Both the position numbers and the translations under genes were made by a program. From positions 263,454 to 283,474 of the forward strand of contig CAXIUT010000057.1 of assembly GCA_964035545.1 (NCBI GenBank): a stretch of 20,021 nt of DNA. Reading direction: 5' to 3'. This stretch comes from Bugula neritina. Its lineage: Eukaryota > Animalia > Bryozoa. Of the stretch, positions 4,706 to 17,543 are shown in pieces (position 1 is the stretch's first letter; the number at the start of each line of letters is the position of its first letter). The notes beneath the pieces were generated by a model. The model was not told the origin of the DNA. It searched no databases and worked only from the letters and a program-made list of their open reading frames with translations.

Positions 4706-6998
4706 TCATATTGATTCAAATTTATGTCCAAATATGACAGCTAGCATTCCTATCAACTTGGTTGAAGCATTTACTGAAAATCCAGCATTTTTATTAATAA
4801 ATGCACCTAGAGATTTACCTATTTGTGATGCTTTGTGGGTATTAGAGCCAATTCCCTGAACAGCTCCTTCACTATTAGTCACTCCACCATTTTCAATATG
4901 TTTGTTCGCAGATGACCAGGCTTCAGCACTTGTAATAGAAGAAGAAGCAAATTGGTGGCCACTGATAGTTATTCCCAGAAGAAGTCCTCCGATTATTTTA
5001 GGACTTATTGAGAAACCAAGAATCAATGGAATTGATATTACTAGGAGTGATGGGATGATCAGGTGTTTGATAGTTGTCAAACAGGCTGGTTGTACACTTT
5101 ATGAGTAGTCTAGTTATGATTATTATCTTGATATTGATGCGTCTTCGTGAAGTTGTGCTTTGATTTGCTGAGATAAGGAATCGACTGACTTTCTTGCTCC
5201 TCTAGAAGTGAGACCTGAAACTAGGAACGGAAAACTGCCTCCGATAAGTAATCCAAGGAAAATAAGGGGATCAGTGAGCGATATCATAGTTTGAGGATCA
5301 TTTATTTTAGCATTAGAGAGGAATGCTCCAAAAAGAATCAAAGCATTTAAAGTAGAAGTACCCATGCTAAGACCTCGACTTACTACGAGAGTAGATTATC
5401 CTCCTTATATAAGTATTTAGGTGGTTTATATTTAATTTTATGAAAGGGAGGCTATCCGTGATGATATATGGGCATTGGAAGATAATGGAGATAAAGTTTG
5501 TAGTGAAAGTTGTAAAGGAAAGGTCGAGATGAATCCTAGGAGAGCTAAAGCAACACCATAGAATCCAAGGAACTAGAATCCATAGAAGATGACTAGAGAA
5601 ATGATGATTGTTGGGGCAATAGAGCTGAAATATCCAAAGGCAAGTCCGAGAGTGACAGATGCAGCTGCTCCTTTTTGGCATTTATCTGCTAGTTTACGAA
5701 CAAAGGGCATTTTTTAGGATGTAACTATTTCTGAATAGAATGATAGAGTTAAATACACAGCAACTCCAACCAAAGTTGAAAGATATGCTTACCAAGGTGC
5801 ATGAATTACATTGATCGTGTTACTAACACTCAACAACTTAAAAGAGTCTGGCAGACAAAGATCAATACTGAGATAAAGAAGTCCTGCCATCAGGAGTGAT
5901 GATATAAGTCTTTGCATGCGGATAGTCTTGATGATTTGTTGGACTGATTCTACCCAAATGATAACTACGCCAATTGCACTTGTAATTATAGATGCTAGTA
6001 GGCCAAAAGAAATGATAAGGAGAGGTAAAACCATGGGAGCAAGATTGATTTAGCATTATGATTAATTATCTCTCCAGCCGAGTATTGAGGTACTCGTGAG
6101 TAGGAAAGTTGCACAGGTGAGTTATGAGTAAGAGCCAAGAAGATCACTACTCGCAGCTATTCCTGATTAGCTAATAATGCCTGAGTGTTTAGCGACTGTT
6201 GCTGCATTTCTTGAGTGAGTGACAGGCAGAGCATTTTATGCTTTTACGATTAATTCTGAACCATGTTCTGTTGCTGATTGGAAGATACCTCCTCCGAGAC
6301 GAGTAACAAAGGCAATAAGAGAGCACCCTAGTCCATATCCAGATATTGCTTAAAAGAGTTATTTAAAGTAGTTGTGGTTGTTACTAGAGTTATTAAGTCC
6401 CAAAGATTCTTTGTAAACTTCAATTATCACTGTCAAAGCTAATTATTAAAAGTTTTACCTAGAAGGTTAAGAGAGGCGATTCCGAATCCTAGTACACAGG
6501 CGGCTTGATATGCGGTTCTGAAGCATGGACCAGTTCCAAATTTAGATGAGTATGATATTTTAGAAGAAGATCGAGTGATTAAAAGCAATGCTGATATTCC
6601 TGTGATAATAGATACAACAGCTCCGATCAGAAAGGAGATGGCTGCTGATAGTGCTAGATCTGTGAATAGGAGTATGAGAATGAAGAGGATGGCGATGAGA
6701 GGTAGTGAAAAAAGATACTATAATTTGAGAAATTGAAGCGCGGCCTATTTGATAAAAGGTGTACATCATAGGTTTTATATCCGAATTAAAGGAGTAACTT
6801 TTTTTGGGATTAAGGCATATCTTCAATCAATCCTTCTTATCCTTCTGTCATAGTTTATTATTAGAGGTCGATGCGTCTCAACATGAGAAGGTTGTAGGCG
6901 GTCCAAAGTACACCGAGAACTGATGCTGTGATGGCTATGATGATGGTGGTGTCGTAGGAGAGAGTGGGCAAACAGAGATCTGTTTCTTTAAGATTCAT
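4706..6998 (-). CDS. Membrane-integral (V-type) H+-pyrophosphatase homolog, 750 aa, with a degenerate catalytic site; introns 6745-6764 and 6439-6458
   Basis: Colinear with plant AVP1-type mPPases: FLKLEY, LFEAISGYGLG, TRLGGGIF, SDLLGSYSE, GAAASVTLGLAFGY, FYGVALALLGFIST, LILFGAF, GLLIGGSFPFLVSGLT, AWSSANKHIE, HKASQIG. The frame is intact once two 20-nt GT-AG introns are removed (2253 nt, 751 codons). Confidence 0.92.
6439..6458 (-). other. 20-nt intron
   Basis: gtaaaacttttaataattag on the minus strand; needed to keep the mPPase frame. Confidence 0.88.
6745..6764 (-). other. 20-nt intron
   Basis: gtacaccttttatcaaatag on the minus strand; needed to keep the mPPase frame. Confidence 0.88.
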
Positions 6999-11116: not shown

Positions 11117-14100
11117 ATGCTGAATTAACTTATAAAAAGGAAACGTACCGCATACCTACTTCTCTTGATATTAATAGTTTCAATCAAAAGTACAACCGCG
11201 CCTATCCAGGTTAGCTTGATATATCATCAATCACTGTGGCAGATTCCACATTAGGAAGCACAACCAGCTATACTTTGAGAATGTTCAGATTTCCAGTCAC
11301 TGCTATCCCTCTCGACTCTTCATTGGTACTATCATTTGACAATGCATACAATGGCAAAATAAACAATCCTTCTTGCACATCTGTATTTAAACTATGATTT
11401 AGGATAGTTTTGGAAATACCAAATTGAGTTGCAGCTATCTTGGTACCAAACTAACTATAAACAATCTGTTCAGTAATAGTAGCTATTTATCATTGAGTAG
11501 TTTTAATATAGTTATCAGTGGAATTTAAAATCCCTCACCAGCAACCACTTATGTCCCTGTTTCACTCATATAAATATACAGTCAGGCTATTACTCTTTTT
11601 GAGAATGGTACTAGTACTACAACAATAACCATATCTCCTTTGACTGCTAGTTGCAATGTATCTATTCTCAATTCGATTGTTTTTGTTCGAGGTTAAGTCT
11701 CAATAACCTATATTTCTTCTCTTATTTCTGGAACATCTAACTCCAATTACTTCTTAAATGTGCAGATGGGATCATACTATCCTGACGATGGTACTGAGAC
11801 TCCGATAAATCCGATTTTTTCTCAAACATTAACCAATTTTCAAAGTTTAGGGAATCAGAATATCTATTCATTTAGATATGTTAGTTAGTTAACTATAACT
11901 ATGTTAATGCCTCCCTCTGATAAACCTCAAGACAACTTTATCACTATTTTTACATCATAATCGATCAACGGAGGCACCTTAGATACCTGTTCTATTAGTC
12001 TAGCTGGCATACAACCTGGAACATTTACTACTAAAAGCATTTCATCATAACTAGTTCAATCTACAAATCCGATTCACTTTAATCTTGAACTGTCGTCTCC
12101 ATTGATAACAACTGATGTCATTTAGATATAATTCGATTCTTCTTTTAATCTTGCTGGAGTAGCAGCTACTTCAATTAATGTATCAGGATTCGATGGGGTA
12201 TTTCCTTTGAATAATTTTGGTAATATTCTTAAATTAAGTGTTAATCATTCTCAATCTGTACTATATGCATCGCTTCCTTTTACTATTAATAACATAGGAC
12301 TACCTTTTACTACAGCTGCTGCTTCCATTAATCTAAGAGTCCTTACTTTTGATAACTACTATCGACTGAACTAAACTGTATTATATAATTCTAAAGCTGG
12401 GACTCTTAATGTGAGTGTAACATGTTTGAACGTATAAGTAGGGGTTACGACAAGTTGCTAGTTTACTATAACAACTGTGAGTACTTTGAAATCAGATGCT
12501 TCAATAGAGGTAGATTTACCTAGTACTTTTTTGGTTGGCACTGGGTCTAATTCTTGTTAATTAATAGGTCTTAATTTGAAATCATTAGTTAATTGTACAT
12601 ATTTTGCAGTTAATAAAACCATCCAGGCAATTGACTTCAATCAATCTACTTCGAATATCCAACCTATGACCATTGTTCTTACAATCCCAATGGATATGAG
12701 TCAATAGGTGGGATAGTTTAATTTAACAGTAAATACTCTTTCATCAGGTGCTGTTGTTGATAGTGGAATAGTCTCTCTAGTGGTTGGTGTTAAAAAATTG
12801 AACAATAACTAACTAAGTTTCACTTCTAGTTCAACAACTACTTTTTCTCCAACTGTTTACACTGTTAATATTGCCTTACCCTTTAATAACGGAGGATTGT
12901 ATACTATTTAGTTGTTTCTACCTGTTAGCTAACGAGAAGGATTGAGTCTTAGTGTATAGGGCGCAGATATTTCAGTTCCTTGGAATCAAAGCAGCAATTT
13001 GGTAACTTTGATGGGACCTTTACTATCAAATGCAAATCTAGCCGTAAATAACTTAATGACACCAGTATCGACATAGCCAACTAACTTCACAATTAAAATA
13101 TATTCACAAGGAAATTTGTTATTCACAGGCAGTTAAATTATAACAATGACTTCTCTGAGAGCAATCTCGTCGCTATCAGTTGTTCAATCTAACAAAATCG
13201 TATATAAATCGTTCAAAGCGAGTATAACTGCAAGCGATTTGGCTGTTGGTGATGTTTTGAGGATATCAACATCCTATGGCAGTTATTTTTATGATACTGA
13301 TCAAACGAATTGCTCTGTTTCTGTTGTGAGTTGCGGATTGGCTGGTGTCTTGACTGTTGTCAGTGTTGGTAATGCTAATAACAACTACACTACATTCGAT
13401 GTGCAACTGATCAACCAGGCCTATCAAGGTAGTGGATAATTGTATGTGGATATTTACGATTCTTTGAACATATATGGCAAACAGCGAGGAACAGCATCGT
13501 TGAGTACTACAATTTTTAATACGATCAGCTATACTGTGACTCAAAGCAATCCCTATTTGAAAGAACAATCTACTTATAAATTCCGTTTGGATTTTACTAC
13601 ACCCAATGTCACTGGCGTCCAGATATCTGCCAGTTCTAGTTTTGGTCAGTAGCTTCCTATTTGTATTCTAAACTGTTTGCCCCCTTCTGTGCTTGGTAGT
13701 AGTTATATTATGCATGTTTCGAATCTTTCTGTATGGACTGAGTTCAGCTGGCAGGTAACCAACCCATCATAATTCAATTCTTTCAGTCGAATGAGTTTTC
13801 TTAGCTTTAGTAACAATGGTAGCAAAGATACAGCCTAGTATCAACCATAACTAACTTGTGCTTTACCGTGTAGGTAGTGTCTATCTTCCGATAATGCTAG
13901 TTGTGTTAATTGTTATTCTTGGAAAAATTAGGCCTATCTTCACCAAAATAGTTGTGTCGATAGCTGTCCAGCAGGATTCTACAATACAACCAGCAACTCA
14001 TATCTAATCTGTGCTGCATGCCCATCTTCATGTTTAAATTGTGTCAGTTCGACTAATTGCACTAGTTGTCTAAGTGGTTTTCTTCTGCATTTGTAAAATT

Positions 14101-17100
14101 GCTTATCGAGTTGTCCAAATACTTTCTATACTAGTAATAATGTAACCTGTGATAGTTGCAATAGTCCATGTGCCAATTGTCAATCTAATGCTAACAATTG
14201 CACCTCCTGTCTTGCTTCTGTTAATTCAATCAACTACTATTATCTCAATAACATTTGTCATCAAAATGCGTGTCCTGATGGCTACTACTCATCATTGACC
14301 AATAATACCTGTTTTCAATGCAATTCAACTTGTCTTACTTGCAATGCTCAAGGATGTTTGACTTGTCTATCTCCATCATTGCTATTTTTAGATACTTGCC
14401 AAGGAACATGTCCATTGGGTTCATACTAACTGAATACAACCAACTGTGCAGCTTGTCCCAGTGGTTGTTCTACATGTAATACTTCAACTAACTGCTAGAG
14501 TTGTTAATCTGGTTTCTTGAGGTTAACTTCATCTACTGGGTCTGACTGCCTATCAGCTTGTCCGAGCCAATACTACTAAGACAATTCTGTTTGTTAGTCA
14601 TGTCCTAATTTGTGTTTGACGTGTTCTTTGATCAATCTCCAACCTTCATGTTCTAGTTGTGTAGATAACAGTCCAATATACTCCTACACTTGTGTTGCTA
14701 GTTGTACTAATGGAACAACGCATGTAGGTGCATACTGTGTCTCTAACGATTGTGGTGCTATATCTAACTGTGTTGTTTGTACTGGTTTTAGATGTTTGCA
14801 ATGTGCTAGTTTGTATACTTTGAGTAGCTAGTTTACTTGTGATGAAGTCAAGTCAACTTCTTAGGTGCTATAGGCCATATCATAAATCCCTGTACCTTTT
14901 CCTTTCTTGATAGCTATTATTATGCTTATTATTGTTTCTTTCTTCTTGAAACATAATTTCAGCAAAATGTTCTCACCACTCTTTATATATGCTCTTGCTG
15001 GTACTCTAGAATAACTCAGTTTGGTTATGTGGACGGTGTTGTCGTTAATATGGAATGCCAATATTGCTTTTCCTTTGCCGATGGTTAGTGTTGCTTATGC
15101 TCCTATTCTCATCCTGATAGGATATGGACTACTAAACTTGGTTCAATTTATATGTTGGAATTGTTGGATATCATCTGATCGTAGGTATCAACTGTGGTCG
15201 AAACAGGACAACCGTTGTGCTTCTCTAACTATTGTAGCATTTAGTTTGTTTTTCTCTTATAGATTGGATGCTTTTAGATTTTCTAAAACTGGTCATTCTC
15301 AGAAACTGTCAACTCCTTTATAAAATACTAATAAATTCAAACATTATAGTGTTTTGGCTGTAATAGGAATGGTAGTTAGTGGATGTAGTATTCTAGTATC
15401 TGTATATATATCATATTTGCAAAATTAATTGAATTATCTATTCTTTTCGTGTTTGGAAGTTACTATTATTTCGGTTATTATGATTGTTCTAAGTATCGTG
15501 ATGTTGTGTGTGCCTAGAGAACAGCTATTAGAAGATAAGGGGGAATATACATATGGACATGGGTCAGATCAACTAGAAGGACCATCTTTGCAGGAAGTAC
15601 TTTCAGGTTTGTCGGTAGTTGAGGAACATCATTCTCATAGAGAGGTCTGTTCATAGAGTGGAAGTGCTGTTTTGAGGCAAAATTAATAAAGTGATGACAG
15701 GACTTCTCAAGATATCACTCGGGTTCAAGGGTAGGGAAAGGGAGCATTTGGTTCGTAAATAGGATTTGGAGAGTAAGAAGGAGATGGAGCGATGTTGGGA
15801 AAAGCTGCAAAGGGAGAGATAGATGAGATGTTTGCGGTGAGTGAGTAGCCGGATAGTAGTAGTCATATTTTGATAGATTAGTTTTAGACAAATAAAAAAA
15901 ATGCTTTTTAGATGAGTGAGCAATATCTTTCTAAAGAAAATAAAGGAGAGCCATTGATGGGAAGACAGGCTGGTTTAATAACTAAACAAAAGTTACAGGA
16001 ATTACCTTAGTAGTTGTCATCATAGTCTAATTTTGGATAATTTGAAGAATATACACTTGATATTCATGCCAAATAATGGAAAAAGAAATCTTAAAAAAAT
16101 CAAACTGCCAGAAAGAATAATTTAGATCATGGAATTGGTTTGCCTTTGGAAGAAGGAGTTGCCGATGCAGCTATTATCGCTCTGAGAGAAAAAGTCGAGA
16201 TGTAACTGAGAAGATAATAAGCTCTTGCAGAGTAGTAAAGAGAAAGGGAGAGAAGATAAAAGGCTAGAAAATAGAAGGAGGAGAGGGAAATAGCGGTTAG
16301 AGAGCAGATAAGCAAGATAGCTCAACTGAATGCATCTTTGCATGCTATGAACATGTAAAGAGCACAGTTAAATACTGTTGCTTAGTAGTTGGAGAAAGAG
16401 TAAAATTAGTTATAATTATATTAAGAGGAGAAGAAGAACTAGGCAAGATAAAGAGTTCAAATGTAGATAGAAGACAAGTTATCAAGGATGACTCTTATTT
16501 TCAATTAATTTCATAATTTTAGGAAGCAGAAGCAAAGGTCAAGAGGAGCTAAGAGGGTTCCATAGTAATAAAAAGGACAAAAAGAGGTCGATAGTAAAGG
16601 AAAGTAGTTGAATTATCGAAATGATGAAAGATAGAATTTGAAGAAATAGGTTTCTCCAACTAAGATAAAAGTGAGACCAAAACCAGAATAGAGTCAAGTT
16701 ACCAGACAACATATATTTGTTGAATAGGGAGGTTAAATCCTATCGAATTCATCTTAAGATCTTGATATAGAATAAGAAGAAATGTAGCTTGTGTTTTAAG
16801 AGTCAGGAAATCAGATAGTGGAAAGCTAGGCAGTATAAAAGCCTAAAAGCATCCTCAAAAAGAATCCTATCAAAGCTATAGGATCGAAAAGTATAAAAAA
16901 AGAACAAAGGAAAAACTCTGGATCTTTCAGAAGTAAAGAAATAAAGTCATTTAATAATAATAATAAAGATAGTAAAAGTATAAAAAGTAAATAGAAAAGG
17001 CCTGTACTGGTTGAACAACTATAAAAGGCATTGGCTCCAGTTCATTTTTAGAGTTACAAGAAGGAATTTTAGTAAAATAGTTAAAATAGCGAGGGAATAT

Positions 17101-17543
17101 AGAAAGAGGATTCGGCTAAAAAGGATGTAATAATATAAACCAGAAACATTCAAATAGACTAGAACGGATAGGAGTAGTTTAATCATATATATCTTTCTAA
17201 CTAGGAATTGATTCAAATATAGGAATCAGATAAGAGCATTCGATCAGATTAATCAGGAAACAAGATATCTCAGCAGTTGAGAGATAGGATAAAAGAGGTT
17301 GAAGAAAGAGCAAACTCCTATATCAGTCAACCGGGCAATAAGAAATCGAAAGAAGGGTATATTTACGAATCGAAGGAATAGATCTATGAAGAGGAGGAAG
17401 AAGATGACAAGACAGTCAACTAGATAGTATTTTAAGAATCTGAAAAAGAGTCGGTGCAGGAACTGATGAGGAGTGAGACGAAGAAGAGGTTTCGAGGGGG
17501 AAGGGTTAACAGGAGAGTAATCGATTTGGCTCCTGGTCATTGA
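11117..17543 (+). CDS. Large surface/receptor-like membrane protein, ~2128 aa: signal peptide, S/T/N-rich beta ectodomain, furin-like Cys-rich repeats, ~6 TM helices, long E/K-rich cytoplasmic tail; introns 11190-11209 and 11383-11402
   Basis: Signal peptide MLNELIKRKRTAYLLLLILIVSIKS. CxxCxxxCxxC...CxxxCPxGxY repeats at ~13855-14845. Hydrophobic segments at ~14890-15510 starting PFPFLIAIIML. One frame runs from 11403 to TGA 17541-17543 and contains five of the supplied + ORF fragments. Confidence 0.85.
11190..11209 (+). other. 20-nt intron, unusually GC-rich
   Basis: gtacaaccgcgcctatccag; joins the signal peptide to the ectodomain frame. The unspliced frame stops at about 11278. Confidence 0.72.
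11383..11402 (+). other. 20-nt intron
   Basis: gtatttaaactatgatttag; contains an in-frame TGA. Confidence 0.88.

Follow-up and report, generated by a model that had tools for sequence, protein, structure and literature searches.

Can a membrane pyrophosphatase (mPPase) that has lost its whole hydrolytic centre still be a gene kept by selection, and what would such a protein do? The question is raised by a stretch of 20,021 nucleotides, here called the window, taken from the assembly deposited for Bugula neritina (NCBI GenBank GCA_964035545.1, contig CAXIUT010000057.1, positions 263,454 to 283,474). Its minus strand encodes, from position 6998 to 4706, an mPPase homolog of 750 amino acids in three exons and two introns, with 26 TAA and 2 TAG codons in frame. 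Research treats mPPases as simple primary ion pumps, as targets for crop improvement and as drug targets in protozoan parasites; to our knowledge, their subfamilies are defined only by ion specificity and dependence on potassium (K+), and all are taken as enzymes. Our comparison of residues, substitution patterns and trees indicates that the window gene is very probably a conserved, selected and catalytically dead paralog of the proton-pumping pyrophosphatase (H+-PPase).

The family assignment rests on profile searches and alignment. A six-frame search with the Pfam profile PF03030 (H_PPase) returned 281.3 bits (profile positions 137-645) and 40.9 bits (30-137), above the cut-off of 29.7, and the stop-free pieces of the protein scored 62, 39.5 and 23 bits against the same profile. 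The summed score of the window gene is 322 bits, compared with 750 and 752 bits for C54 and C253, two intact paralogs. In the sequence alignment the protein is collinear with canonical mPPases from end to end, with no large insertions or deletions, and pieces of it align by HMMER to residues 546-612 and 638-754 of the mung-bean enzyme (PDB 4A01). Residues are numbered after mung bean (Vr), through HMMER alignment to PDB 4A01 in the C-terminal half and through the anchor table of PMC6882861 elsewhere. Residue roles and lists were taken from PMC6882861, and 40 positions were tabulated in 27 sequences. As defined in that source, the hydrolytic centre consists of 12 acidic residues (D253, D257, E268, D269, D279, D283, D287, D507, D691, D723, D727, D731), three lysines that contact pyrophosphate (PPi), K250, K694 and K730, and N534, with D287 and D731 activating the nucleophilic water.

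None of these 16 residues is kept in the window protein. The segment covering transmembrane helix (TM) 5, loop 5-6 and TM6, residues 220-279 or Vr 242-301 (6122-6301, minus strand), carries K250S, D253E, D257E, E268V, D269T, D279K, D283I and D287S, along with D270H and N280H outside the list of 16. The TM11-12 motifs, residues 487-528 or Vr 500-541 (5375-5500, minus strand), carry D507S and N534E together with the further changes D500Q, D527E, D530I, A537L and K541R. Closer to the C-terminus, WSSANK replaces WDNAKK (4901-4918, minus strand; D691S, K694N), and GKSLGAFINKNAG replaces GDTxGDPLKDTSG (4781-4819, minus strand; D723K, D727A, K730N, D731K), with D731K conserved in all crown-clade orthologs and in ortholog L019. 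Among the 16 replacements only D253E and D257E are conservative, as is K541R among the further changes. Among the 12 ciliate sequences used as canonical references, 11 carry all 16 residues unchanged, the exception being the partly degenerate L058, and so do two of the intact paralogs from other organisms. Each substitution listed in the original prediction, made from the letters of the window alone, was found where it had been placed; the helix 5-6 segment named there corresponds exactly to residues 220-279 (6301-6122), and a proper alignment bears out the absence of the catalytic Asp and Lys residues.

The loss exceeds what general divergence would give. Across 186 near-invariant canonical columns the window protein keeps 45%, the background rate, and retention of 0/16 catalytic residues has p of about 2e-5 against the non-catalytic background. 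The net charge at the 16 positions is -9 in canonical enzymes, -4/-5 in the orthologs L016 and L019 and 0/+1 in the crown clade of the divergent family. The signature of type I (K+-dependent) enzymes is absent, position 537 being Leu rather than Ala and position 541 Arg rather than Lys; by descent, the divergent clade nests among ciliate enzymes that all carry A537 and K541 and is thus derived from the K+-dependent subfamily. On this alignment, the window gene is a member of the mPPase superfamily without the catalytic feature that defines the enzyme family (the PPi-energised H+/Na+ pumps, TC 3.A.10).

Given the absence of the three PPi-contacting lysines, of both water-activating aspartates and of 10 of the 12 acidic ligands (the other two acidic positions are Glu), we infer that binding and splitting of Mg-PPi are lost to the window protein, which would therefore not act as a primary pump. 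As far as the alignment tells, the Mg-PPi site is dismantled and partly rebuilt with conserved residues of its own: E257, H280, Q500, R541 and K731. This rebuilding leaves room for another explanation, a pump that is still energy-coupled, in which the ligand of a remodelled site (E253, E257, H270, H280, K279, K731, R541) would be a metal, another phospho-compound, or PPi bound in the absence of the customary Mg cluster. The replacements are indeed not random, being conserved in part; D253E and D257E are conservative acidic changes, and basal L016 retains D500, D723, D727, D731 and K694. Nevertheless, a pump is very unlikely when K250, K694 and K730 are all gone, when D287 and D731 have gone with them and with 10 of 12 acidic ligands, and when the site varies among orthologs far beyond what a working catalytic site shows.

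The ion path has fared differently from the hydrolytic centre. All gate and funnel-base residues are present in the window protein (S235, R242, D294, G297, S298, E301, N738, K742), and the hydrophobic-gate positions L232, A305, L555 and 746/749 remain hydrophobic or conserved. R242, D294 and E301 (the last two at residues 272 and 279 of the window protein) lie in the same 6122-6301 segment from which so many catalytic residues have disappeared, and the gate lysine K742 (16.50) corresponds to K734 of the window protein (codon 4757-4759, minus strand), which is Lys in every ortholog with reliable alignment there. In the tabulated alignment, S5.43, R5.50, D6.50, S6.54, E6.57 and K16.50 are present in all seven members of the divergent clade, with D294E in L019 as the single departure. 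Retention of 7/7 ion-gate positions has p of about 0.004, or 0.02 with the count restricted to the five that are polar or charged. That R242, D294, E301 and K742 would all be retained had been part of the original prediction, and the alignment agrees; among orthologs, too, the gate stands above background.

Does this pattern belong to a living gene, or to one copy in decay? Orthologs were sought by HMMER, searching exhaustively with the last 124 residues of the protein, and then by a scan of contigs and metagenomes in which genes were stitched. The best HMMER matches were short fragments at 48-57% identity with the same degenerate motifs, for example AWSSAKK and IGNLMGIMIKKNAS. The scan yielded full-length, intact orthologs in L008 (L008-L011, four samples), L012/L023, L016-18 and L019, a 5'-truncated one in L025, and partial ones in L022, L013/14, L015 and L064. 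Altogether, the same losses are shared by orthologs at 33-56% identity in no fewer than six other contigs or lineages that read TAA/TAG as Glu. All of them use this code and share the same two intron positions, with introns of 20 nucleotides apart from one of 21. The candidate pseudo-enzyme of the original prediction is therefore borne out in its pattern of loss, but its scope has to be amended, since it is not a one-off but a peritrich-wide family. By guanine-plus-cytosine (GC) content, the orthologs fall into two classes, about 0.60 (L012, L022, L013, L015) and 0.37-0.41 (L008, L016, L019, L025 and the window), so peritrich lineages of very different base composition carry the family.

Selection was estimated by maximum likelihood (ML) as omega, the ratio of non-synonymous to synonymous rates, under the model GY+F3X4+G4 after TAA/TAG had been changed to GAA/GAG. 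The divergent clade has an omega of 0.161, its crown 0.145 and the canonical ciliate enzymes 0.079, all rough values because synonymous sites are saturated. Between orthologs the Nei-Gojobori proportion of synonymous differences (pS) reaches 0.76-0.92 and that of non-synonymous differences (pN) 0.21-0.42, and at such saturation the pairwise ratios are not quotable; weight is therefore placed on the ML values and on close pairs. The unsaturated close pairs agree with the ML omega. In L008 and L011, a close pair in the sister lineage, 43 differences are synonymous and 7 non-synonymous (pN/pS 0.05). For the window gene and near-relative contigs (run X8) the counts are 5 synonymous, at third codon positions, and 1 non-synonymous.

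In the light of these results, it is most improbable that the gene is a pseudogene or is being lost. Some observations lean towards it: the public sequences that hold the gene are DNA only and give no sign of transcripts, the window gene has a longer end branch than its nearest ortholog (0.54 vs 0.31), and K694N is unique to the window copy. They are opposed by the intact frame of 750 codons with correct splice sites, by the intact orthologs described above, and by synonymous sites that are saturated at a pN of 0.21-0.42, with the same excess of synonymous change towards the near relative. We regard the pseudogene reading as largely refuted. The argument against random decay in the original prediction, made from the pattern of losses, is thereby strengthened by the frame, the orthologs, purifying selection with omega far below 1, and the split of 0/16 catalytic against 7/7 gate residues.

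Constraint along the protein is also distributed anew. Of about 185 near-invariant canonical columns, the crown clade leaves 50 unchanged, has 19 fixed for a different residue and is variable in 116, and the fixed switches include D257E, N280H, D500Q, K541R, G604R and D731K. Pairwise identity in the canonical catalytic blocks falls from 0.84-0.92 to 0.38-0.66 in the crown clade. The stretch of highest identity there is residues 31-90 (0.70-0.76), the end of TM1 and cytoplasmic loop 1-2 (6709-6908, minus strand, spanning intron 1), where canonical ciliate mPPases show their lowest conservation (0.26-0.42). On these conservation profiles, loop 1-2 is a region that has acquired new constraint.

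This shift makes a scaffold or membrane-organising role unrelated to ions worth considering, for example the binding of a cytosolic partner through loop 1-2, with the gate kept for the fold. That the strongest crown-clade constraint falls in residues 31-90 and not in the inner-ring helices would suit such a role, as would the 116 canonical near-invariant columns that have become variable. We consider it improbable all the same: no polar gate residue is lost among lineages whose sequences differ at roughly half of all positions, the hydrophobic gate is kept too, and retention this specific is not what fold stability alone would lead one to expect.

The origin of the family is visible in the tree. 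In the ML analysis the seven usable divergent sequences form one clade (100/100), placed inside a clade of canonical enzymes that read TAA/TAG as Glu (100/100), and their sister is the intact paralog C54 (94/89). Two intact paralogs lie in the same genome, at G000 C54:2070-4122 and C253:5273-7419, both on the minus strand and both with every catalytic motif kept, so that the intact paralog which the original prediction had proposed to look for is present twice. C54 shares with the window gene the code, introns of 20 nucleotides and both intron positions; unlike the window gene, C54 and C253 have a third intron. Because the divergent clade nests in peritrich canonical enzymes, with C54 as its sister and both intron positions in common, the family is, on this phylogeny, the product of a duplication of a K+-dependent H+-PPase within peritrich ciliates. 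Catalytic loss is, on the residues kept by each branch, stepwise, with L016 and L019 as intermediates; L016, the basal member, is the one that still holds D500, D723, D727, D731 and K694.

Two active enzymes in one genome with a dead relative also invite the idea of partnership. mPPases are obligate dimers with communicating sites. The window protein could thus be a non-catalytic subunit forming a heterodimer with one of the two active mPPases and tuning or locking its activity, substrate inhibition or coupling, an arrangement that we judge somewhat unlikely but worth keeping in view. The two intact paralogs would supply the partner, subunit asymmetry and negative cooperativity of mPPases have been described (PMC6882861), and the interface residues S15.45 and Q15.48 are kept together with the hydrophobic TM13 positions. 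For some soluble enzymes, the live form is tuned by a dead paralog. One case is the Trypanosoma brucei AdoMetDC prozyme, a dead paralog by which its enzyme is activated (PMC5201418). On the other hand, identity to C54 at 16 interface positions (6/16) is not above the whole-protein value of 0.34, and the inter-subunit pair E13.59/R13.62 is not kept, being Q/K in the window protein and T/Q in L008. Since the interface is variable even among canonical enzymes, this comparison has little power and does not separate a heterodimer from an autonomous protein.

The alternative that we prefer for the working part is the retained ion path in an autonomous protein, to which we give somewhat less than an even chance on the present alignments. 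The original prediction had put forward a leak or channel, a sensor and a heterodimer partner as candidate roles. The window protein would act alone through its retained transmembrane path, as a PPi-independent, otherwise-gated conduit for H+ or cations, or as a module sensing ions or voltage. Its site of action would be the vacuolar-type membranes that house ciliate H+-PPases, and the rebuilt funnel together with loop 1-2 would form a new regulatory or ligand side. In its most specific form, which is speculative and rather unlikely to be right in every part, the proposal is that peritrichs turned a PPi-driven H+ pump into a PPi-independent gated channel, carrier or sensor, whose R242-D294-K742-E301 gate would conduct or bind H+ or cations, while a neutral funnel (E257, H280, K731, R541) and loop 1-2 would control it for another ligand or partner.

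Several points weigh against our overall interpretation. The public holders of the gene and its orthologs are DNA-like contigs with introns in place, silent on RNA either way. A word-index search for spliced fragments with the stop-free part of exon 2 found only P0153/L064, which is unspliced and is genomic because it reads into the intron. Behind the ML omega lie synonymous sites that are saturated and sequences whose GC content differs widely. At the gate itself, N738 (16.46) varies in the crown clade (N, C, G), and the buried residues R242, D294, K742 and E301 could perhaps be kept only for folding of the inner helix ring, so that their retention is no proof that ions pass.

The gene model behind these comparisons is as follows, all on the minus strand. 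Exon 1 (6765-6998) begins with the ATG at 6998-6996 and encodes residues 1-78, covering TM1 and the start of cytoplasmic loop 1-2, and its N-terminus aligns with those of L008 and L012. Intron 1 (6745-6764; 20 nucleotides, GTA..TAG, GTACACCTTTTATCAAATAG) is followed by exon 2 (6459-6744), which encodes residues 79-173 and the first base of codon 174, covering TM2-TM4. Intron 2 (6439-6458) is again of 20 nucleotides, GTA..TAG (GTAAAACTTTTAATAATTAG), and the positions of both introns are common to C54 and all orthologs. Exon 3 (4706-6438) runs from the remainder of codon 174 to residue 750 and the TGA stop at 4708-4706, covering TM5-TM16; the third intron (PGLLV|ILSP) of C253, C54, L016 and L019 is absent from it. 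The intact frame of 750 residues and the two spliceable introns had been proposed from the sequence of the window, and both the frame and the splice sites are confirmed.

The frame depends on the genetic code. Under the bacterial code the region yields only short open reading frames (ORFs), and when TAA and TAG are read as sense a single long minus-strand frame in three pieces appears. Columns holding TAA/TAG in the window gene, its orthologs and the two canonical paralogs consist of Glu in 0.14-0.39 of residues, as against Gln in 0.02-0.04, and in-frame TAA/TAG also sit on conserved Glu columns. The codon of E301 is TAA in the window gene, L008, L025 and C253, TAG in L016, and GAA/GAG in L012, L019 and C54; at E257, TAA/TAG alternate with GAA/GAG just as at invariant E301. 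The choice of table 30 in the original prediction fits these columns. Table 6 (TAA/TAG as Gln) was considered and is ruled out for the window genome and all divergent-clade contigs by the reassigned codons on Glu columns; it does hold for other ciliate contigs that serve as canonical references. The share of Glu residues encoded by TAA/TAG is 28/43 in the window gene against 12/29 and 8/32 in the two canonical paralogs, C253 and C54, and the difference is a possible hint of a different expression level or of codon selection.

The stitched introns of the family in contigs with TAA/TAG as Glu (window, L001, L002, L008, L012, L016, L019, L025) all have the form GTA...AG and a length of 20 nucleotides, the one of 21 being in L016, and this fixed length extends to metagenomic orthologs from other species. 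In the flanks of the window, a long Glu/Lys-rich, coiled-coil-like ORF occupies 1-2541 on the plus strand and extends beyond the start of the window, and at 11340-17540, also on the plus strand, a frame stays open over 2067 codons. In a eukaryote, such neighbouring ORFs are not expected to bear on the function of the window gene.

Set beside the Vigna radiata type I H+-PPase (PDB 4A01/5GPJ), the window protein is collinear in sequence over its full length and has the same gate and hydrophobic-gate residues. It differs in keeping 0/16 hydrolytic residues, in A12.46 to Leu, K12.50 to Arg and D11.50 to Gln, in a charge of about 0 rather than -9, and in having its strongest constraint in loop 1-2. 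Folds kept under selection after loss of their chemistry are familiar from iRhoms and Derlins, which derive from rhomboid proteases, and from CFTR and SUR, which derive from ABC transporters; these share the concept with the window protein, and their folds are unrelated to it. The T. brucei prozyme (PMC5201418) is likewise a dead protist paralog, but it is soluble and its partnership is demonstrated there, whereas partnership of the window protein is hypothetical. Within the reach of a full-text literature search, no catalytically dead or pseudo-mPPase was found, and the accessible parts of the ciliate H+-PPase literature deal with active isoenzymes only.

Partial degeneration was also seen elsewhere. 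In ciliates that read TAA/TAG as Gln, L058 (whole locus) and L021p (L021:42-1832; also L020) are a partly degenerate pair (98/98) inside canonical enzymes of that code. The losses of L021p include D253E, D269R, D283N, D500Q, D507K, D691G, D723Q and D727S, and both keep R242, D294, E301 and K742; being intron-free single ORFs, they are transcript-like. In the haemosporidian Hepatocystis sp., VWU51424.1 (P0024; L063:436-2592), annotated as 'V-type H(+)-translocating pyrophosphatase, putative', shows D253N, D287N, D500E, D507V, D691E, D723N and D727S. It keeps R242, D294, E301 and K742, stands outside the ciliate clade at the end of a long branch (1.12) and may be non-hydrolytic too. Because these cases are placed elsewhere in the tree, their origins are independent; only 6-11 of the 16 residues are lost in them, so in none of them is the loss complete, and none has the switch residues that the peritrich crown clade conserves.

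A conserved clade with its whole hydrolytic centre erased and its gate kept shows that the mPPase fold can be selected for something besides pumping driven by PPi. In it, nature has taken apart the disputed coupling of hydrolytic centre, funnel and gate, raising the question of the role of the gate when no substrate binds, and the clade also names residues to transplant into model mPPases: D731K, K541R, D500Q, N280H and D257E. If the conversion proposed above is true, it would be the first natural change from pump to channel or from pump to sensor in the mPPase family, and a natural experiment on how hydrolysis and gating are coupled. The independent partial cases suggest that such degeneration is recurrent in alveolates, and counts of 'H+-PPase' genes in these organisms may therefore need rereading.

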